Sequence record: PP496439.1
Direction: 5' to 3' (one strand)
DNA: 64,000 nucleotides
Shown: positions 7,005 through 25,390 of the stretch, piece by piece
Numbering within the stretch: position 1 is the stretch's first letter
How the letters are laid out: each line of letters opens with the position of its first letter
Program-made: the position numbers and the translations under genes
The notes under the pieces: generated by a model
Told to the model about the DNA's origin: nothing
What the model saw: the letters and a program-made list of their open reading frames with translations, nothing else
Databases searched by the model: none

Positions 7005-9026
7005 ATGACAATCAAGAGTGCTACGTTTGCGGAAGCTGAATCGCAAGCTCAAGGCCTAGCCAACTCCATGGGATGGCCGGGTGAGGTAATGGACAACGGT
7101 GACGGCACTGTCACTCTGTCGCCACCCGACGCATGGGACGATGAAGAGAACCCCGGCAAGGTGGCAGCGTCCAAGCTGACCGGCAACAAGGACTGTCACG
7201 TCTTCGCCAGTATGGTGGTGCCCAGTGAAGGTGAGTGGATGGCTGTCGTCATTCAAGGTACCCCAGCGCTGGTACTCATCGACCAAGGATCTGGTGAAGG
7301 CTGGTTGACCCTACAGGCCCCTGCGGACTTCGATGTCCCGGAGAGCGTGCTGATTCCTTTCCAACAACGCCTGACCCAAACGGAAACCGCTTCAATGGAT
7401 ATCGATCAAAACGTAGAACTGGCAGCAGGTAAGAAAGCGTCCGAGGTAGACGTATTGCTCAAGCTGCGCGCTGAGTACGACAGCATCAAGACGGCTAAGT
7501 CCCGCGTAGGAATCTTGCGCGCCAAGAAACCAGCCGAATACAAAAAGAAAGTAGCGGATCTGAACAAGCGGGAAGAAAAGCTGAAAGCTGCTATCGAAAA
7601 GATTATCCCGTCAGGCCGTATGCCTTCGCACGACAGTTTGGTTCGCCGTAAGGCAGCAGAGGCTGGCAAGCCCGTAGCGCCTGTTAAGCGGGTGAGTAAG
7701 GAGGATAAGGATAAGGCCGCGAAGGATCGAATCCACCAGAACATGCTTCAAGATTCCAAACGTACCAGCGATACGGTCAAGAAGCATGGTGTCTCCGAAT
7801 CAGAAGCCCGCACTTTGCACCGGGGCAAGTACCCCAAATCTTACATGCAGGCTGAAAAGGATCTGGATGAGCTTACCCACAAGCTAAAAGATCCGGACCT
7901 TACTGATGCGCAGGAAGCCAAGCTGGAAAAAGAGGTAAAGGAACGTCGGGCGCAACTGAAGTCGAAGAAAAAGAAATATGATGCCGTCCTCAAGGAAACA
8001 GAGGAATCCTCGGTTAAGCCGGTCACTCGTACTCAAGTTCTGGCTAACGTATCCAGCGACCCGGCCACTCCTGATTATCAGGAAGCCTCGATCACTGGTG
8101 TTACGCCGGAAGGTAACATCTCAGTAGCGTTCGCTGACGGTGACATCGGTGTGTACCAAGGTAAGTTCGACCCGGCTGGCCTTATGCCAATCGCGGAAGC
8201 GGCAGGCGTTGAAGTTGCCAGCTTCAAACACCACACCATGGTTCTGGCCAACGTTGGCACTGCGGCAGCACCTGAATACGCCGAAGCTGAGGTGGTTGGT
8301 TCCACCGAGGAAGGCCATCTGGAAGTCGCTTTCGCCGATGGTGACGTGGGTATCTACCGTTCCTTGTTCCACCCTACCGGTATCTTACCGCTGGGTGTGA
8401 CTGCCGAGACGGCCAGTGTGCTCATCGAGGTAGCTGCACGTACGGCAATGAGCCCGGAGCAGAAGCTCAAGCGTGCTGAGGACCTGCTCAAGCTGCGCAT
8501 CCTGCACGACAAGTACGAGACCAACACCGACGCCCTGAAAGGCAAGAAGGGTCCGGACAATAAAGCCAAGCGCGACAAGAACAACGCTGACAAGGTGAAG
8601 CTTCGTGCCAAGCTGGACAAGATGGGTGTCACGTCGCTGCCGAGCAAAGCTCACCTGCAGCGTACCATCAAGCAGCACAGCGATCTGCCGACTCGTATGC
8701 GTGCATCGGACAAGAAGCCAGCCGTCAAGCCGGGGGCTAAACCCGCTGCTAAGAAGCCAGCGGCTAAGAAAACTATCGTAAGCCTCAATGACGATATCAA
8801 GCTTGCCAAGTCACGGTTGAAGTCTGCCAAGTTAAGGGGGGATGAAAGTACCATCAAGCATGCAGAGGCTCAGATTGAAAAGTGGACCGACGAGCTGAAT
8901 GATCTGCTCAGGGCCAAAGGGCATGATATCCCTGTTCGCAAGAAACCAGCTGCAAAGGAAGCACCTGCCTCTAACACTCGGGAAGTTAACCGAATGGCCA
9001 AAATGATGAAGAAGTACAAAGGCTAA
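7005..9026 (+). CDS. Lys-rich putative internal head protein with two Tudor/SH3-like repeats (VLANV...VAFADGD)
   Basis: CAGGA RBS 8 nt before ATG 7005; internal repeat at 8025-8393; histone-H1-like KKPA tracts. Confidence 0.7.
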   Translation: MTIKSATFAEAESQAQGLANSMGWPGEVMDNGDGTVTLSPPDAWDDEENPGKVAASKLTGNKDCHVFASMVVPSEGEWMAVVIQGTPALVLIDQGSGEGWLTLQAPADFDVPESVLIPFQQRLTQTETASMDIDQNVELAAGKKASEVDVLLKLRAEYDSIKTAKSRVGILRAKKPAEYKKKVADLNKREEKLKAAIEKIIPSGRMPSHDSLVRRKAAEAGKPVAPVKRVSKEDKDKAAKDRIHQNMLQDSKRTSDTVKKHGVSESEARTLHRGKYPKSYMQAEKDLDELTHKLKDPDLTDAQEAKLEKEVKERRAQLKSKKKKYDAVLKETEESSVKPVTRTQVLANVSSDPATPDYQEASITGVTPEGNISVAFADGDIGVYQGKFDPAGLMPIAEAAGVEVASFKHHTMVLANVGTAAAPEYAEAEVVGSTEEGHLEVAFADGDVGIYRSLFHPTGILPLGVTAETASVLIEVAARTAMSPEQKLKRAEDLLKLRILHDKYETNTDALKGKKGPDNKAKRDKNNADKVKLRAKLDKMGVTSLPSKAHLQRTIKQHSDLPTRMRASDKKPAVKPGAKPAAKKPAAKKTIVSLNDDIKLAKSRLKSAKLRGDESTIKHAEAQIEKWTDELNDLLRAKGHDIPVRKKPAAKEAPASNTREVNRMAKMMKKYKG

Positions 9027-9997: not shown

Positions 9998-10002
9998 CAA
10001 CC

Positions 10003-10035
10003 GCCCGCTCTGGCAAACGCTGGGGCGGGCTTTTT
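10003..10035 (+). terminator. Rho-independent terminator
   Basis: GCCCGC/GCGGGC stem followed by TTTTT. Confidence 0.8.
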
Positions 10036-10083
10036 CGTATCTGCTAATTACAAAACATGGATAAATAAATTGGAAGATGGGAC

Positions 10084-11295
10084 ATGATCAAATTCGTGGA
10101 GATATCCGCACCTAGTTCGGACTTCGCCAAGACCCTCAAGAAAGGCATACGGGTCGTGGTTAACATGGGATCTACGAAGGAACCGTCCTATTGGATGGCG
10201 ACTGTAGCAAAGAACAATGCAGCGAAGGGCACCGTCAACCTGAACTTCGATGATGGAGACGTGGCCGAGTACAAAGCTATCAAGTCCAAGGTGGGTATTG
10301 TCGGGATCGGAGTTGCCAAAGTCCGCAAGACTGAAATCCCATTGTCTCAGGTTGGCAAGTGGCTTACTAGTGAGGAAACTACATCACCGTCCTCCTACCT
10401 GTCTGACCCTGTCCAGAAGTTTTTAGCTAAGTGGGTAGACTCCTTTGATAAGGACGGGGCCAATCCTTCAAATAAGAAATACTTGTTAAAGACAATGAAG
10501 GACTTATTACCTAGCATACCCGAAGAGTATAGAAAACATACGGGTATCCTTTTCCGAGGGGTTAGGCTACCAGTAGAAGCTGTAACTTCTATCCTCGCGG
10601 GTTCTCGACTAAAATTTAAAGATGAGTTCATTTCGTATTCCTCCGATAGAGATGCTGCTGTAAAATTTGCGGCCTACGTAGACTATGATAAAGGAAAAGA
10701 ACAAATAGGGATAGTAATAAAAGAGGATAGTAACTCTGTTGCGGTTAATATCTTTGAGGTATGGGATAACATCTCGTCAAAGTACAAAGATATACATTCT
10801 CAATCATTTGTAGATGAGGAAAAAGAAGTAGTACTTCAAAACTTCAACCTGGGACTAGCTACTTCACAGATTGATATGCTACTTATATCTAAAGGTAAAA
10901 TAAAATCATTAGGGAAGCAGGAGCCTCCCGGCTGGAATAAGTTTCTTAAATCAAGTGGAATACTTAAAGACATATATTGCATTCCCAACACTAAAGATAA
11001 TATTAAGGGTGTACAAGAAGTCCTTAGTTTGAACACGACAACTCTTATGAATCCGCAGAAGATGTCGGCTATACTAACCAAACTAGGATTTCCTAAATCT
11101 AACGGGGAAACATTTAGGACGGTGTACCTTCCTGACCTAGAGCTTTCTATAAAAGCGTCTATGGTTCCTCAAGGAATACTGTTCGAGACTGGTAAGGGCT
11201 GGCGATTTGCCAAGTTTGAGTATAAACAGGTAGGGATAGCAGAGGATGAAGCATCCGCTATCAATTTATTTAATATGATAGTCAAACAAAGATAA
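10084..11295 (+). CDS. Chimeric protein: N-terminal Tudor-like phage module plus R-S-E class ADP-ribosyltransferase domain
   Basis: LFRG, FISYSSDRDAA and EEKEVVL motifs; GC falls to about 30-38% in sampled lines after ~10420; N-terminus 68% identical (56/82 aa) to a segment of the next gene. Confidence 0.75.
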   Translation: MIKFVEISAPSSDFAKTLKKGIRVVVNMGSTKEPSYWMATVAKNNAAKGTVNLNFDDGDVAEYKAIKSKVGIVGIGVAKVRKTEIPLSQVGKWLTSEETTSPSSYLSDPVQKFLAKWVDSFDKDGANPSNKKYLLKTMKDLLPSIPEEYRKHTGILFRGVRLPVEAVTSILAGSRLKFKDEFISYSSDRDAAVKFAAYVDYDKGKEQIGIVIKEDSNSVAVNIFEVWDNISSKYKDIHSQSFVDEEKEVVLQNFNLGLATSQIDMLLISKGKIKSLGKQEPPGWNKFLKSSGILKDIYCIPNTKDNIKGVQEVLSLNTTTLMNPQKMSAILTKLGFPKSNGETFRTVYLPDLELSIKASMVPQGILFETGKGWRFAKFEYKQVGIAEDEASAINLFNMIVKQR

Positions 11296-11298
11296 TAG

Positions 11299-11328
11299 TT
11301 GCACGGGCTGTTTTGGGTGTGCTATAAT
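11299..11328 (+). promoter_or_regulatory. Sigma70-type early promoter (TTGCAC-18-TATAAT, extended -10)
   Basis: TTGCAC 11299-11304, TGC-TATAAT 11323-11328; near-duplicate of the promoter at 48888. Confidence 0.75.
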
Positions 11329-11381
11329 AGCACCATGGCACTATTCAAGCGCCGCCCACTGTCCCAATGAGGAAAGCAACC

Positions 11382-13034
11382 ATGGCCAGATTGACCCTAG
11401 CAACCGTTAACGCCGAGATCGCAAAGTCCGGTGGCAAAGAAACTCTGGTCAAGGGTAAGGCCTACTTCTACTGGATAGGTGGCCGTGCCGACGCCGATCC
11501 TCAAATCTGGACTTCCATTTACGTTGCTGCGCTAAACCAGATGACGCTGGCCCAGTGGCTGGAAGACTGGAAGCGCAATGACGACCAATACAACAAACCT
11601 ACTCCCGACAAGGAAACCCGCAAAATGGCTATCAGACACGTTCAGACCCTCGCAGCTCCTACTAAATCCGGTAAGACGGCATCTGCCAACCCAGCACTGG
11701 AAGCAGCCGAAGCTGAACTTAAAAAGGTTCAGAGCACCATTCAGGGTTTCAAAGCCCGTGGCCTGGTCCCTACTTCCCCGTGGGAAAGGAAACTCAAGGA
11801 CGCTAAGGCGGCTGTGTCCGCTGCCAAGAAAAAGAAGACCACTGCTGCTCCTGCACAGGAGACTGCTTCCCCGGCTACCGACTTCGCCAAGTCGTTGAAG
11901 AAGGGCGTTCGTGTACTGGTCAATCTCGGCAACACCAAAGAACCGTCCTACTTCCTCGGCGCCATCACCAAGAACAACGCCAGCAAGGGTTCGGTCAACG
12001 TGCTGTTTGACGACGGCGACGTTGCAGAGGTACGTGCGATCAAATCCAAGGTCGGCATCGTGGGCATCGCTATCGATAAGGTGCGCAAGTCGGAAGTTCC
12101 TGCTGCCCAGATCAGCAAGTGGCTGGCCGGTGCAACGCCAGCGACCAAGGTACCCGTAGAATTCATTCCGGTACCTACTCCGGTAGCTGAAATCCCCGAC
12201 GCAGGTCTGGAACAGGTTATTCAAGCCATACTCAAGCGTAGTGTATCGGGTGCCCTGTCAGTGGAGAAGACGCATAAAATGGACTTTACCAAAGAGGCCA
12301 TGCCTAAAGCTATGCGTACTAACTACCTGAGCGTAGCGAAAAAAGCAGGGGTGAAGACTGCTACCTTCGATAATAAATCCCAGAAGTGGGTACCAGATGG
12401 ACTTGCAACGGTTCCGGTTATCCCAAAAGCAGGTAAGTCCAAACCATTCAGCCCAGCGGAAGCCCGGAAGGTAATCGGTGCTATCCCCGGCTGGAAGGCA
12501 TCCAACGTGAAGAACAAAGCGTCGGCCACGTTCACCAAAGATTACCCGAACGGTGTAACTGCTACCGCATTGATCTTCCCGACTCACGTTACGTTCAATT
12601 ATCCTCAAGGTGAGAACGATCACGTCGGCGACTTGTCCAAGATCCCAGCCTATATCCAACAGATCGACGAGGATCAAGCCGCACCAGTAGAAGACGGCAA
12701 AGCACTGGATGATCTGGCCAAGGCATTGAAGGGCTGGCCGAACAAGGTCCTCCCACGGGATGCTGACGAAGACAACTTCCTGCTGCGCGGGTTTGAAGAT
12801 GATGACCTTCCGGCTGATGTGGAGCCAACCGCTGACGCCATCGAAGCACATGCAATCTCGATCTTCAAGAAGATGAAAAGTGTTGACAACTTCAAGAAGA
12901 GCAAGATGTACCACGGCGACAACACATACTCCTTCTCGGCTGGCGGCACCGTGGGCTACGTGTACTTCGATGAAGATGGCGTCGGCATGGTCCGGGCAAC
13001 CCCGTTCCAAGAGTCCACGCCGGGAAAGTCCTAA
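11382..13034 (+). CDS. Multidomain Lys/Ala-rich hypothetical protein containing the Tudor-like module
   Basis: GAGGA RBS supports ATG 11382; shared module at 11880-12125. Confidence 0.8.
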   Translation: MARLTLATVNAEIAKSGGKETLVKGKAYFYWIGGRADADPQIWTSIYVAALNQMTLAQWLEDWKRNDDQYNKPTPDKETRKMAIRHVQTLAAPTKSGKTASANPALEAAEAELKKVQSTIQGFKARGLVPTSPWERKLKDAKAAVSAAKKKKTTAAPAQETASPATDFAKSLKKGVRVLVNLGNTKEPSYFLGAITKNNASKGSVNVLFDDGDVAEVRAIKSKVGIVGIAIDKVRKSEVPAAQISKWLAGATPATKVPVEFIPVPTPVAEIPDAGLEQVIQAILKRSVSGALSVEKTHKMDFTKEAMPKAMRTNYLSVAKKAGVKTATFDNKSQKWVPDGLATVPVIPKAGKSKPFSPAEARKVIGAIPGWKASNVKNKASATFTKDYPNGVTATALIFPTHVTFNYPQGENDHVGDLSKIPAYIQQIDEDQAAPVEDGKALDDLAKALKGWPNKVLPRDADEDNFLLRGFEDDDLPADVEPTADAIEAHAISIFKKMKSVDNFKKSKMYHGDNTYSFSAGGTVGYVYFDEDGVGMVRATPFQESTPGKS

Positions 13035-20521: not shown

Positions 20522-23395
20522 ATGTATGTAATCCGCCGAGACGGAAGTCGTTCCTTGTTCCAGAGCGAAAAAATCCGGGCTGCTATTGAGCGAGCCTTCT
20601 TCGCGGTACACGGTCGTGATGCTGATATTCCCACACAGACTGGCCGTGTCACTCAGGCAGTAGAGTCTGGCTTATCCAGTCAAGAATCTGTCCACATCGA
20701 AGTCATTCAGGAAGGCGTACTCGCTGCGCTGATCGCGGAAGGCCACCCCCGCGTCGAGCATGCCTACCGCGTGTATCGAGACGCCCGCACTGCCCAGCGT
20801 GAGCTGCCCCAGGCTTACACTGACGAGAACGGTACTGCTATCAGCATCCCGGCTCTCACCGACATCCTCGCCCGCGTATCCTTCCGCCTGCCCTACGACG
20901 TGACGGTTCACTTGGACCTGGTGGCCGTGGCGCGCTCGGCGTTCCTGCAGATGTTCAACGGGATCAAGGCAGCTGACGTGCACAACGCACTGATCTTGGC
21001 AACCCGTGCGTTCATCGAGCGTGCCCCGGAGTACAGCAATCTGGCAGCGCAACTGCTGCTGGCCCAGACGGCGCGTGAAGTGTGGGACCTTGACGCCACC
21101 ACGTACCCCACCGCCGATACCTACGCCAAGTGCTACAAGCAGGATACCGTAAGGCTTCTGATTGTCGGCGTGAAAGACGGCATCTACGATCCCAAGCTGA
21201 CCACTGGTGGCAGATTAGGATTTGACTTGGACCTCCTCCGGTCAGCAATCAAACCGGAACGTGACCTGCAGTTCGACTACTTGGGTTTGCAGACCCTGTA
21301 CGACCGTTACTTCATCCGCCGCGCGGGCGAAGGCGTTCGTATCGAAATGCCACAGACGTTCTTCATGCGGGTGGCCATGGGTCTGGCGATCCTTGAAAGC
21401 GATCCAACGTCAGCGGCGCTTGAGTTCTACGATGTGCTATCCACGTTCGACTACATGGCCTCAACCCCCACCCTGTTCAACGCAGGCACCACCCACAGCC
21501 AGATGTCGAGTTGCTACTTGACCACTGTGCCGGACGACCTGCTGGGCATCTACGGCGCCATTCAAGACAACGCCATGCTGTCCAAGTACGCTGGCGGTCT
21601 GGGCAACGACTGGACGCCGGTGCGTGCACTGGGTAGCCTGATCAAGGGCACCAACGGCAGGTCGCAAGGCGTGGTCCCGTTCCTCAAGGTGGTTAACGAC
21701 ACCGCCGTCGCCGTGAACCAAGGCGGAAAGCGCAAGGGTGCCGTGTGTGCATATCTTGAAACGTGGCACATGGACATCGAAGAGTTCACCGAGCTGCGCA
21801 AGAACACAGGTGATGATCGTCGTCGTACCCACGACATGAACACCGCCAACTGGGTTCCTGACCTGTTCATGGATCGCCAGATGAAGGACATGGATTGGAC
21901 CTTGTTCACTCCGTCGGAATGCCCTGACCTCCATGAGATGTACGGCGAGGCTTTCAAAAACCGTTACGAGTTCTACGAGGCGGAAGCTGCCGCTGGCCGT
22001 ATCCAGACCTTCAAGACCGTGCGCGCCAAGGACTTGTACCGCAAGATCCTGTCCATGATCTTCGAAACCGGCCACCCGTGGATCACGTTCAAAGATCCGT
22101 GCAACATCCGCAGCCCGCAGCAACACGTCGGCGTCGTGCACAGCTCCAACCTGTGTACTGAGATCACCCTGAACACGAAGTCCTCCGCGCCTGAACTCAA
22201 GGACGGCGAGACGGCAGTGTGCAACTTGGGTTCGATCAACCTGCCGCGCCACTTGAAATACGTGGGCGAAGGTGGGCAGTCTCTGGACATCGACCACGAG
22301 AAGCTGAAACGCACCGTTACTCTGGCCGTGCGTATGCTGGACAACGTGATCGACATCAACTTCTACCCGACCAAGGAAGCGAAGAACAGCAACATGCGCC
22401 ACCGTCCGATCGGTCTGGGTGTCATGGGCTTCCAAGACGTGTTGTACGCCAACAACGTCGGCTATGACAGCGAGCTGGCTACGTTCTGGGCGGGCTACTT
22501 CCAGCGGTCCATCGCCTTGTACGCCATCAACGCATCATGTGATCTGGCCCAACTACGCGGTGCGTACGAATCATTCCAAGGTTCGGATTGGTCGCTGGGT
22601 GTTCTTCCAGTTCACACGTTCCAAACCCAGATCGATATCCGTCGTCGTCAGGGCTTCAAGGTGGAAGCAGCGCAGAAAGCCCAAGATCATGCGTACTTTA
22701 TCGGCAAAACCAAGATCAACGGCAAGACGCTGAACGAGTTGGAAAGCCAATTGGCGAACAAGGTAACTCACGGCATGCGTAACAGCAACGTGATGGCGAT
22801 TGCGCCGACGGCTACCATCTCGAACATCGTGGGTGTGACTCAGAGCATCGAGCCTACGTACGAGCAGGTGTTCGTCAAGGACAACCTGAGCGGCAAGTTC
22901 ACCGTGATCAACCGCTTCTTGGTTGAGCAGCTGCGTAATTGCGGTCTGTGGGACTCGGACATGCTCGACCAGCTCAAGATGAAAAACGGATCCATTCAGG
23001 GCATCCCTGAAATCCCGGAAGGCATCAAGGACGTGTATCGCACTGCGTTCGAGTATGAGCCTGAGGTGCTGATCAACTGTGCCATCCAGCGTCAGATCCC
23101 AATCGATCAGGCACAGTCGCTCAATCTGTACATGGCGAACCCGTCGGGTAAGAAGCTGGCGAACACGTACGACTACGGCTTCGAGATTGGGTTGAAGACC
23201 ACGTATTACCTCCGCGCCAAGGCTGCGTCGTCCATCGAGAAGTCCACCAGTCGTACCGGCGGCGAGTTGAACAGCGTCAAGAACGCTGCGAAGGTAGAAG
23301 CCCCCGTTGCTGCTCCAATGCCGGAAGCTGAAGGTGCTGCATGCTTCCTGCGTCCAGGTGATCCGGGCTTTGCAGAGTGCGAAAGCTGCCAGTAG
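20522..23395 (+). CDS. nrdA: Class Ia ribonucleotide reductase alpha subunit with N-terminal ATP-cone(s)
   Basis: YVIRRDG ATP-cone, TPTLFNAG, SSCY, SNLCTEI, CNLGS, TTYYLR and C-terminal CESCQ. Confidence 0.97.
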   Translation: MYVIRRDGSRSLFQSEKIRAAIERAFFAVHGRDADIPTQTGRVTQAVESGLSSQESVHIEVIQEGVLAALIAEGHPRVEHAYRVYRDARTAQRELPQAYTDENGTAISIPALTDILARVSFRLPYDVTVHLDLVAVARSAFLQMFNGIKAADVHNALILATRAFIERAPEYSNLAAQLLLAQTAREVWDLDATTYPTADTYAKCYKQDTVRLLIVGVKDGIYDPKLTTGGRLGFDLDLLRSAIKPERDLQFDYLGLQTLYDRYFIRRAGEGVRIEMPQTFFMRVAMGLAILESDPTSAALEFYDVLSTFDYMASTPTLFNAGTTHSQMSSCYLTTVPDDLLGIYGAIQDNAMLSKYAGGLGNDWTPVRALGSLIKGTNGRSQGVVPFLKVVNDTAVAVNQGGKRKGAVCAYLETWHMDIEEFTELRKNTGDDRRRTHDMNTANWVPDLFMDRQMKDMDWTLFTPSECPDLHEMYGEAFKNRYEFYEAEAAAGRIQTFKTVRAKDLYRKILSMIFETGHPWITFKDPCNIRSPQQHVGVVHSSNLCTEITLNTKSSAPELKDGETAVCNLGSINLPRHLKYVGEGGQSLDIDHEKLKRTVTLAVRMLDNVIDINFYPTKEAKNSNMRHRPIGLGVMGFQDVLYANNVGYDSELATFWAGYFQRSIALYAINASCDLAQLRGAYESFQGSDWSLGVLPVHTFQTQIDIRRRQGFKVEAAQKAQDHAYFIGKTKINGKTLNELESQLANKVTHGMRNSNVMAIAPTATISNIVGVTQSIEPTYEQVFVKDNLSGKFTVINRFLVEQLRNCGLWDSDMLDQLKMKNGSIQGIPEIPEGIKDVYRTAFEYEPEVLINCAIQRQIPIDQAQSLNLYMANPSGKKLANTYDYGFEIGLKTTYYLRAKAASSIEKSTSRTGGELNSVKNAAKVEAPVAAPMPEAEGAACFLRPGDPGFAECESCQ

Positions 23396-23479
23396 TCTGA
23401 TCCAGCTGTAATGTAAATGATAGGGCGGGCAGGCAACTGTTTCCGCCCTATTTCATCTGTTGCACATGGGGCTTACCTT

Positions 23480-24265
23480 ATGAGTGCTGTACCTAATCGT
23501 GTGTCCCTAGTGGACAAGCGCATCTTCAACGGAAAGGCTGATGTCAACGCCTTGCTACCGCTTCGGTATCCGTGGGCCTATGACGCCTACGTGAACGCGA
23601 ACAAGAACCACTGGCTTCCCGGCGACATCCACCTCGATCTGGATCGAGTCAACCATGAACATCAGTCGTACTGGCCTGCTGTCAGCCGGTTCCTGATCAG
23701 CGTAGCCCAGCGCGCCGAGATCGATCGACAGCACATGCTCTTCGTGTATCGGGCCACCACGGCGCCCGAGGTTCGTCAGCGCTTCCTCCGCATGGGGCAG
23801 GAAGACACCATTGCCATCATGCTGGCGCAAGACATGGGGCTGGCACTGGAAGACTTCATCCCGTCTCCAGAGGTGGTGTTGTACAAGACGGAGAAAGCCT
23901 ATCTGGCCGGGCTCATGGAACTGATCGAGCGTAAGCTCTTGTCCGTGGCCGAAGGCAAGTACATCCTCGAAGAAGTACCGGGGGTGCACCAGAATATACG
24001 CAAAGCAGTTGAGAACATCCACCGCGACGTGGACTCTCAGTTGGACTTCCTGTTCACCCTGCTGCGCACCTTCCTTGGCGAATGCGAGGTCAGCTCCTAC
24101 CGGGGTTGCAACACGCAAGCGTTCTGGCAGAGCAGCAACCAGTACCACGCCCACCTGAACTCGATTGTTCTGAACGTTCTGACGGGGGCGCCGGTTACCC
24201 CTACGCCGTATCAGACACAGGTGGTCGCAGACAACCAAACCAAAGACACACTGACCTGGGACTGA
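23480..24265 (+). CDS. Degenerate NrdB paralog (beta-prime): metal ligands and radical Tyr lost, L-x-W-D tail kept
   Basis: NHWLPGDI matches NHWLPQEI; EEAFHTESY becomes EDTIAIMLA; RDESGH becomes RDVDSQ; ends TLTWD versus GLEWD. Confidence 0.8.
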   Translation: MSAVPNRVSLVDKRIFNGKADVNALLPLRYPWAYDAYVNANKNHWLPGDIHLDLDRVNHEHQSYWPAVSRFLISVAQRAEIDRQHMLFVYRATTAPEVRQRFLRMGQEDTIAIMLAQDMGLALEDFIPSPEVVLYKTEKAYLAGLMELIERKLLSVAEGKYILEEVPGVHQNIRKAVENIHRDVDSQLDFLFTLLRTFLGECEVSSYRGCNTQAFWQSSNQYHAHLNSIVLNVLTGAPVTPTPYQTQVVADNQTKDTLTWD

Positions 24266-24267
24266 CT

Positions 24268-25242
24268 ATGACCGTTCTTACTCACGTAAACCCGCACGAA
24301 CATGAGTGGGCGTTGGAAAAGACCTTGGCGTCAAACTCGAACCATTGGTTGCCCCAAGAGATTGGACTGTCCACCGACATCCTGCAATGGAAGACCGGAC
24401 AGTTGAGCGACGACGAGATGCGCATGGTCAAGCGTAACCTCGGGTTCTTCTCCACCGCTGACTCGCTGGCCGCGAACAACATCATTCTTGGCACTATACG
24501 CCACATAAAGAACCGTAACTGTCGCCACTACCTGTTCCGACAAGCGTATGAAGAGGCATTCCACACGGAGTCCTACGCGTACGTGATCGAGAGCCTTGGT
24601 TTGGATCAGGGTGAGATCTTCAACGCGTACAACGAGATCGACTCGATCCGGGCCAAGGACGAATTCCTTCTGCCGTACATCGAGGTGCTGACCGATCCGG
24701 CGTTCCAAGCGGACACCATCGAGAACGTCCAGATCCTGCTCAAGTCACTTTTCGCTTTCGCGTGCATTATGGAAGGTCTGTTCTTCTACGTCGGCTTCGT
24801 CCAGATGCTGTCTCTGGGCCGTCGCAACAAGCTGCCCGGCTCCTCGCAAGAGTTCCAGTACATCCTGCGCGATGAGAGCGGCCACTGCAACTTTGGCATC
24901 GACCTGATCAACACGATCAAGCGCGAGTACCCAGGCGTGTGGACTGCGGAACTCCAGAAGGAGTGCACCGACATGTTGCGCACCGGCGTTGACCTGGAGC
25001 AAGCCTATGCGGTAGATACCCTGCCCAACGGTGTGCTGGGTCTGAACGCGGACAACACACGCCAGTACCTGGAGTTCATCGCGGACCGCCGCTGCATTCA
25101 GGTGGAGCTGCCAGTACAGTACAACCAGAACGACAACCCGTTCCCGTGGATGTCGGAGATGGTTGACTTGAACAACGAGGAGAACTTCTTCGAGAAGAAG
25201 GTGCTGGCATACCAGCAAGCCGCCGGACTGGAGTGGGACTAA
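24268..25242 (+). CDS. nrdB: Class Ia ribonucleotide reductase beta subunit
   Basis: Full ligand set: STADS, EEAFH, radical Tyr (HTESY), IMEG, RDESGH; C-terminal AYQQ...LEWD. Confidence 0.95.
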   Translation: MTVLTHVNPHEHEWALEKTLASNSNHWLPQEIGLSTDILQWKTGQLSDDEMRMVKRNLGFFSTADSLAANNIILGTIRHIKNRNCRHYLFRQAYEEAFHTESYAYVIESLGLDQGEIFNAYNEIDSIRAKDEFLLPYIEVLTDPAFQADTIENVQILLKSLFAFACIMEGLFFYVGFVQMLSLGRRNKLPGSSQEFQYILRDESGHCNFGIDLINTIKREYPGVWTAELQKECTDMLRTGVDLEQAYAVDTLPNGVLGLNADNTRQYLEFIADRRCIQVELPVQYNQNDNPFPWMSEMVDLNNEENFFEKKVLAYQQAAGLEWD

Positions 25243-25243
25243 C

Positions 25244-25345
25244 ATGATCTATACGTGTCCGAAGTGTAACCGGTTGCATTCAGATGGGACAAGCAACTTC
25301 GAGCTAGTCGTTCTGTGCCGGTATTGCAACCCACTGAAGGGGTAA
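25244..25345 (+). CDS. 33-aa Zn-ribbon micro-protein (absent from the ORF track)
   Basis: MIYTCPKCNRLHSDGTSNFELVVLCRYCNPLKG; GGAG inside the nrdB 3' end; two CxxC motifs. Confidence 0.55.
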   Translation: MIYTCPKCNRLHSDGTSNFELVVLCRYCNPLKG

Positions 25346-25357
25346 TACGGTCCGGTA

Positions 25358-25390
25358 AATAGGGGAGTGAGCAATCGCTTCCCTATTTTT
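25358..25390 (+). terminator. Terminator-like hairpin with GCAA loop
   Basis: AATAGGG...CCCTATT stem plus T run. Confidence 0.65.

Follow-up and report, generated by a model that had tools for sequence, protein, structure and literature searches.

A cofactor-deficient NrdB paralog encoded in tandem with nrdB is a candidate partner subunit of a phage ribonucleotide reductase

In a 64,000-nucleotide stretch of sequence record PP496439.1, referred to here as the window, the gene lying between nrdA and nrdB encodes a homolog of the ribonucleotide reductase (RNR) small subunit R2 (NrdB) in which the metal site and the radical tyrosine have been lost. We call this protein beta-prime and, on the basis of sequence comparison and of analogy with known systems, propose with a probability of roughly 0.55 that it is a functional, non-catalytic RNR small-subunit paralog that serves the phage's own class Ia reductase and is paired with NrdB as a beta/beta-prime heterodimer. 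Bacterial and phage class I reductases are regarded as beta2 homodimers.

Organization of the nrdA/beta-prime/nrdB locus

The region matched PP496439.1, the record of Pseudomonas phage vB_PpuM-Amme-1, at 100% identity, and the coordinates of the window and of the record agree. This phage is a jumbo myovirus that infects P. putida and has a genome of 202 kb. The following features make up the locus:

20522..23395 (+), nrdA, RNR large subunit, 957 aa, with ATP-cone, all-alpha and barrel domains (Pfam PF03477/PF00317/PF02867)
23419..23452 (+), G+C-rich hairpin in the 84-nt spacer between nrdA and beta-prime (RNA fold)
23480..24265 (+), beta-prime, R2/NrdB paralog without metal site or radical Tyr, 261 aa (homology, fold, ligand mapping)
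24268..25242 (+), nrdB, canonical RNR small subunit, 324 aa, with six ligands and the radical Tyr and without the N-terminal arm (Pfam PF00268, 264 bits)
25244..25345 (+), unannotated 33-codon ORF with two C-x-x-C pairs, zinc-ribbon-like, starting 1 nt past the nrdB stop
25357..25388 (+), terminator-like stem-loop, a 14-pair stem followed by a T-rich tail (terminator scan)

The large subunit scored 1224 bits on NCBIfam NF005544 (cutoff 965), in agreement with the annotation of PP496439.1, in which nrdA and nrdB are named on either side and the ORF between them is deposited as a 'hypothetical protein'. As the preliminary description of this DNA had stated, the ORF is intact over 261 codons. It occupies 23480-24265, and its stop lies 2 nt ahead of the nrdB ATG at 24268. 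In two related records a start further upstream, the ATG at 23417, has been annotated for beta-prime; this longer frame reads through the spacer hairpin and is unsupported by those homologs that begin at the shorter position. Production of a fused beta-prime/NrdB protein by frameshifting was set aside: beta-prime ends in a stop, nrdB has an ATG of its own in another frame, and the two-gene layout is found in every relative.

Folding of positions 23396-23482 yielded -32.5 kcal/mol (z = -3.5), and none of 200 shuffled sequences was as stable. A simple terminator scan made no call on the hairpin at 23419-23452, which could act in transcription attenuation or in transcript stabilisation. The 33-codon ORF is identical in eight and 97% identical in one of the nine related phages, is missing from distant relatives, has no PHROG match and is possibly the last gene of the operon. 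Judged from its sequence features, the stem-loop at 25357-25388 likely marks the end of the nrdA/beta-prime/nrdB transcription unit.

Several further observations concern mobile elements at this locus and other parts of the window. A free-standing HNH endonuclease gene is located between nrdA and beta-prime in one of the nine close relatives (Peetri, L002:4506-5207), and an HNH gene also occupies this junction in two very distant metagenomic relatives (L017:1265-1996 and L192:5307-6011). The three HNH proteins are 45-49% identical, indicating that the same homing-endonuclease family appears sporadically at one junction. The nrdA of L192 (L192:1356-5246) encodes 1296 aa, with a faint intein-splicing match that splits the barrel domain; such an intein would bring the mobile elements of that RNR operon to two. 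Positions 10001-12000 of the window have a G+C content of 0.46 compared with about 0.55 elsewhere, and the low-G+C stretch covers hypothetical genes at 10084-11295 and 11382-13034, just past the head maturation protease. Finally, ARAGORN called a tRNA-Gly (GCC) at 8184-8261 (+) within an annotated 2-kb coding gene (7005-9026); either the call is false or the two annotations conflict.

Beta-prime is a full-length R2 homolog

That the ORF aligns with NrdB had been proposed from three NrdB-like motif pairs, all of which were found in the sequence as quoted. Direct BLASTP comparison of beta-prime with the neighbouring NrdB aligned the N-H-W helix only. A phmmer search against the PDB returned the R2 entry 6y2n (5e-12) and Chlamydia R2c (1e-09), while the match to NCBIfam NF005550 reached E = 6e-17 with 61.5 bits, below the 309-bit threshold, and that to Pfam PF00268 reached 21.6 bits, below the gathering score of 33.6. 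When the beta-prime family was aligned to the adjacent NrdBs by hhalign, a probability of 97.6% was obtained over 247 columns. The top PDB matches of an AlphaFold monomer model (pLDDT 86, pTM 0.84) were all R2 structures, with 6y2n and Chlamydia R2c first. A second monomer model, built from beta-prime sequences alone (pLDDT 79.5), possessed the same helices and gave the same PDB matches, indicating that the R2 fold assignment is independent of canonical sequences. Query-normalised TM-scores of the two models reached up to 0.70. No other domain or family was matched in Pfam, PHROGs or NCBIfam, and PHROGs contained no family corresponding to beta-prime. The phmmer, NCBIfam, hhalign and AlphaFold results extend the proposed similarity to the whole protein and confirm beta-prime as a true R2 homolog over its full length.

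A nearby homing endonuclease, and a function distributed over two polypeptides, recall split or mobile-element-invaded phage RNR genes such as the fragmented nrdA of an Aeromonas phage (PMC3045599). However, in contrast to a split gene, the N-H-W helix and those that follow it occur in beta-prime as well as in NrdB, so that cutting of nrdB in two by a homing endonuclease is excluded and duplication followed by divergence is indicated. Another superficially similar case, the 'short nrdB' copies of Candidatus Liberibacter, was rejected as a parallel because these are recent partial duplicates and represent a different phenomenon (PMC5154197).

In a neighbour-joining tree, the adjacent NrdBs formed one clade nested among arm-bearing NrdBs, and the beta-primes formed one long-branched clade whose internal branching followed that of the NrdBs beside them. 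The length of the beta-prime branch makes the placement of its root unreliable. This pattern fits one old duplication that was followed by joint inheritance and complementary degeneration. Judged from its NCBIfam and fold matches, beta-prime descends from a PRK07209-type bacterial/phage NrdB and not from a eukaryotic lineage.

The metal site and the radical tyrosine are lost throughout the family

The ligand columns were mapped via a profile alignment of eleven beta-primes against eight adjacent NrdBs. The six ligands and the radical Tyr were invariant in all eight NrdBs. By contrast, five of the six metal ligand positions (both His, the Asp and two Glu) were replaced by non-ligand residues in the beta-prime family. 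The Asp position is occupied by A, S or H and the first His position by A, W, C or S, the second His position is Q in ten of the eleven proteins and M in the remaining one, and hydrophobic or small residues stand at the second and third Glu positions. The first Glu position remains acidic in 8 of 11, being Asp in the window protein. The position of the radical Tyr, four residues past the first His, falls into a gap of the beta-prime profile alignment with no Tyr nearby. Two residues that canonical R2 conserves, the N-H-W Trp and the Asp that follows a conserved Arg, are invariant in the beta-primes. The preliminary description had listed both His, one Glu and the radical Tyr as lost; these losses are real and their extent had been understated, because the Asp and a second Glu are gone too. 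The loss of ligands and Tyr leaves beta-prime unable to bind a dinuclear metal cofactor or to carry a tyrosyl radical.

These losses also separate beta-prime from the R2 types that are non-canonical at the radical site. In the class Ic protein R2c of Chlamydia, only the radical Tyr is replaced and the Mn/Fe ligands are intact, the protein still bearing a cofactor (PDB 2ani is the F127Y mutant), and a class Ic identity was excluded because beta-prime has lost the ligand set. The class Ie metal-free R2 retains the radical-site Tyr and converts it to a DOPA radical; this identity was excluded because Tyr is absent from the radical site of beta-prime. R2lox was excluded as well by the lost dinuclear ligand set, and R2lox models matched the canonical NrdB only, and weakly.

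Beta-prime is conserved under purifying selection next to nrdB

Beta-prime was intact, at exactly 786 nt, in all nine related phages, and 38 synonymous and 18 non-synonymous differences separate the Amme-1 and Peetri copies. The dN/dS ratios of informative pairs (Nei-Gojobori) were 0.05-0.12 for beta-prime, 0.05-0.18 for nrdA and 0.02-0.05 for nrdB. Comparison of dN/dS and synteny among relatives, which had been suggested in the preliminary description, returned purifying selection on beta-prime and conserved tandem synteny, and in none of the nine related phages was the ORF absent or frameshifted.

The family is small and distinct, being known from about 15 protein clusters, all of them on phage or phage-like contigs. 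Among 1.84 billion representative proteins searched with a profile, about eight full-length clusters ranked above canonical NrdBs, and in a 5.8-billion-protein collection eleven proteins were found at E<=1e-89, the next match being a canonical NrdB at 1e-34. A scan of IMG/VR with the beta-prime profile returned no family member, one-genome-per-species bacterial contigs returned canonical NrdB genes only (the best match, L019, being an ordinary 379-aa NrdB), and the best 80 matches of a metagenome scan, ranked by the N-terminal third of the window protein, were canonical NrdBs only.

A tandem of a ligand-deficient R2 and nrdB was found in ten independent lineages (window, L004, L005, L006, L015, L016, L017, L018, L192 and L191), and beta-prime lineages diverge to about 27-30% identity with motifs and position kept. 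In every beta-prime member whose contig was readable, the gene lay directly upstream of a canonical nrdB, the two genes overlapping by up to 10 nt or standing up to 6 nt apart (window, L004, L005, L006-L008, L015-L018 and L192). Most loci had nrdA upstream and were situated in phage-like replication modules with genes for a clamp-loader-like AAA protein, DNA polymerase A and topoisomerase I. Two R2-like proteins, P0012 (L191:6001-7005) and P0013, fall outside the core family and have partly degenerate metal sites; a canonical nrdB begins 7 nt downstream of P0012, a ligand-deficient R2 more distant than the family members. Cofactor-less R2 partners may be wider spread than the beta-prime family as defined here.

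The N-terminal arm is kept in beta-prime and reduced in the adjacent NrdB

Conservation among beta-primes peaks in the N-terminal arm (residues 6-30), the first helix, residues 93-118, part of the helix at 171-201 and the last five residues, while the protein is variable elsewhere. The arm, the N-H-W helix, the 93-118 segment and the C-terminal L-x-W-D tip, all retained in beta-prime, are shared with NF005550 (PRK07209) NrdBs, with Chlamydia trachomatis R2c (PDB 1syy, 4m1i) and with 6y2n, which differ from beta-prime in keeping a complete metal site. In the beta-prime-only AlphaFold model the arm was placed at low confidence, as would be expected of a segment that packs against a partner and equally of a shallow alignment.

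In NrdBs encoded next to beta-prime, this arm is either shortened and degenerate or missing. The window NrdB scored 501 bits on NF005550 with a match starting only at profile position 64 of 383. Complete absence of the arm is limited to the window's clade and L004, for which the initial statement that the active NrdB lacks the arm holds; it fails for the more distant relatives, where the arm is shortened or degenerate. On the beta-prime profile, adjacent NrdBs reached 31-54 bits, L006 giving no match at E<=1e-5. By contrast, ten IMG/VR relatives of the phage NrdB (48-60% identity) carried a full arm and reached 108-135 bits, and an eleventh (L188, 39% identity) had a shorter, divergent N-terminal region and reached 69 bits; no beta-prime was present within 4 kb of any of the eleven. 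Thus, the arm is degenerate or missing in beta-prime-adjacent NrdBs and full in their closest beta-prime-less relatives, which is a new observation. Given that most adjacent NrdBs retain a shortened arm, complementation between the two copies is possibly partial. The earlier view that the tandem represents a partition of functions rather than decay is borne out by purifying selection, tandem synteny, co-divergence with nrdB and this complementary arm loss.

At the other end, beta-prime terminates in a disordered tail with an invariant L-x-W tip. Retention of the L-x-W-D tail had been recognised correctly as far as the tip is concerned, but the tip is not special to the phage, because an L-x-W-[D/E] tip is common to all canonical NrdBs of the subclass, including the phage's own. 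Beta-prime is without the segment preceding the tip, which carries the conserved tail Tyr in canonical members, and without the helix region between residues 119 and 137, and these two losses may alter the dimer interface and NrdA docking.

Discussion

We infer that a tandem duplication of nrdB was followed by complementary degeneration of the two copies, and that their products assemble as a heterodimer; the pairing is suggested by gene spacing, co-divergence and complementary arm loss. NrdB would contribute the cofactor, the radical and the radical-transfer tail, and only this protomer would make and deliver the radical. Beta-prime would bring in the arm, offer NrdA a second tail to dock with, and perhaps help in folding or cofactor loading. 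Class Ia RNR is an asymmetric, half-sites enzyme and as such is compatible with one active beta per dimer, so that a dimer with a single active protomer can work; PDB 6w4x was listed among the fold matches of beta-prime. Going further, the enzyme might be an obligate alpha2-beta-beta-prime reductase in which the ancestral parts are split and NrdB is unable to homodimerise functionally or to mix with host subunits. We regard this extension as tentative, with the odds leaning slightly against it.

Instead of pairing with NrdB, beta-prime alone, as a monomer or homodimer, could bind NrdA via its C-terminal tip and tune the phage enzyme. The invariant tail tip and the heavily trimmed R2 core would suit such a regulator, and yeast Rnr4 is also able to homodimerise (PDB 1sms). 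However, this explanation accounts neither for the loss of the arm from NrdB only alongside beta-prime nor for the almost complete lack of spacing before nrdB throughout the ten lineages, and we consider it unlikely.

Host NrdA is another conceivable target, with beta-prime acting as a decoy whose tail fills the beta-binding cleft and thereby stops or redirects host dNTP synthesis. Given that the L-x-W-D tip is generic among bacterial NrdBs of the same subclass, cross-binding is plausible and binding to host NrdA would be equally possible, and beta-prime would be unable to deliver a radical there. But the phage NrdB has the same tip, so that a tail decoy would compete on the phage's own NrdA, and conservation of the arm and core would be superfluous for it. 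The slow evolution of beta-prime and the embedding of its gene between nrdA and nrdB, and not among early host-takeover genes, likewise speak for a subunit of the phage reductase, as far as gene arrangement and rate can tell, and leave the decoy improbable.

Gain of a new, non-RNR activity in the remodelled interior of the helical bundle appears more improbable still. Polar residues at or near the former metal site have been kept in the family (D183 and E108 are invariant and Q187 nearly so), but the Asp and the N-H-W Trp are conserved in canonical R2 too, no other domain or family was matched, and the strict linkage to nrdB points to a role in RNR. Finally, a functionless, decaying nrdB duplicate, to which the lost catalytic residues and the Pfam score under the gathering threshold could be ascribed, is refuted by a frame that is intact in every genome seen, by a dN/dS of about 0.1, and by distant tandem loci in which gene, motifs and position are kept down to 27-30% identity, and its probability is negligible.

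The proposed beta/beta-prime heterodimer has an established counterpart in yeast, where Rnr4 plays the beta-prime role with Rnr2 (heterodimer, PDB 1jk0; Rnr4, PDB 1sms). Like Rnr4 of S. cerevisiae, the phage protein is a ligand-deficient R2 paralog that stands beside an active R2 and has been retained by selection. Unlike Rnr4, its origin is independent, with 1sms and 1jk0 ranking 40th-49th among its fold matches, and its loss is more complete, with five of six ligands and the Tyr gone and the core cut to 261 aa. The comparison with Rnr4 made in the preliminary description is therefore valid as a functional analogy and not as common descent, the nearest relatives being PRK07209-type NrdBs. Rnr4 (Y4) is without key residues of the diiron centre and is a possible chaperone in an alpha2-beta-beta-prime holoenzyme, and secondary R2 polypeptides are usually the N-terminally shorter ones (PMC3824934). 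By contrast, it is the active phage NrdB and not the secondary copy that is shortened N-terminally. A second non-canonical R2 beside a canonical one also occurs in Apicomplexa as R2_e2 (PMC3824934), which differs in belonging to a eukaryotic lineage, in lying outside an operon and in its ancestry. In the full texts searched, a set that lacks most subscription journals, no such ligand-deficient R2 was described in a phage or bacterium, in agreement with the initial remark that no phage case was known; the paper on the phage collection of vB_PpuM-Amme-1 leaves ribonucleotide reductase unmentioned.

If the obligate alpha2-beta-beta-prime enzyme exists, the phage reductase would be insulated from that of the host, and its small subunit would be the first heterodimeric one outside eukaryotes, having arisen independently of yeast Rnr4. 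A conserved phage beta-prime would mean that the solution of a cofactor-less partner evolved more than once. The lineages provide a natural series in which the division of arm, metal site and tail between the two copies can be read from sequence, and they would offer a compact system for asking what purpose a second protomer serves in the small-subunit dimer of RNR and how the N-terminal arm functions in this NrdB subclass. About 15 protein clusters that now stand as 'hypothetical protein' or, wrongly, as active RNR beta subunits become correctly annotatable.
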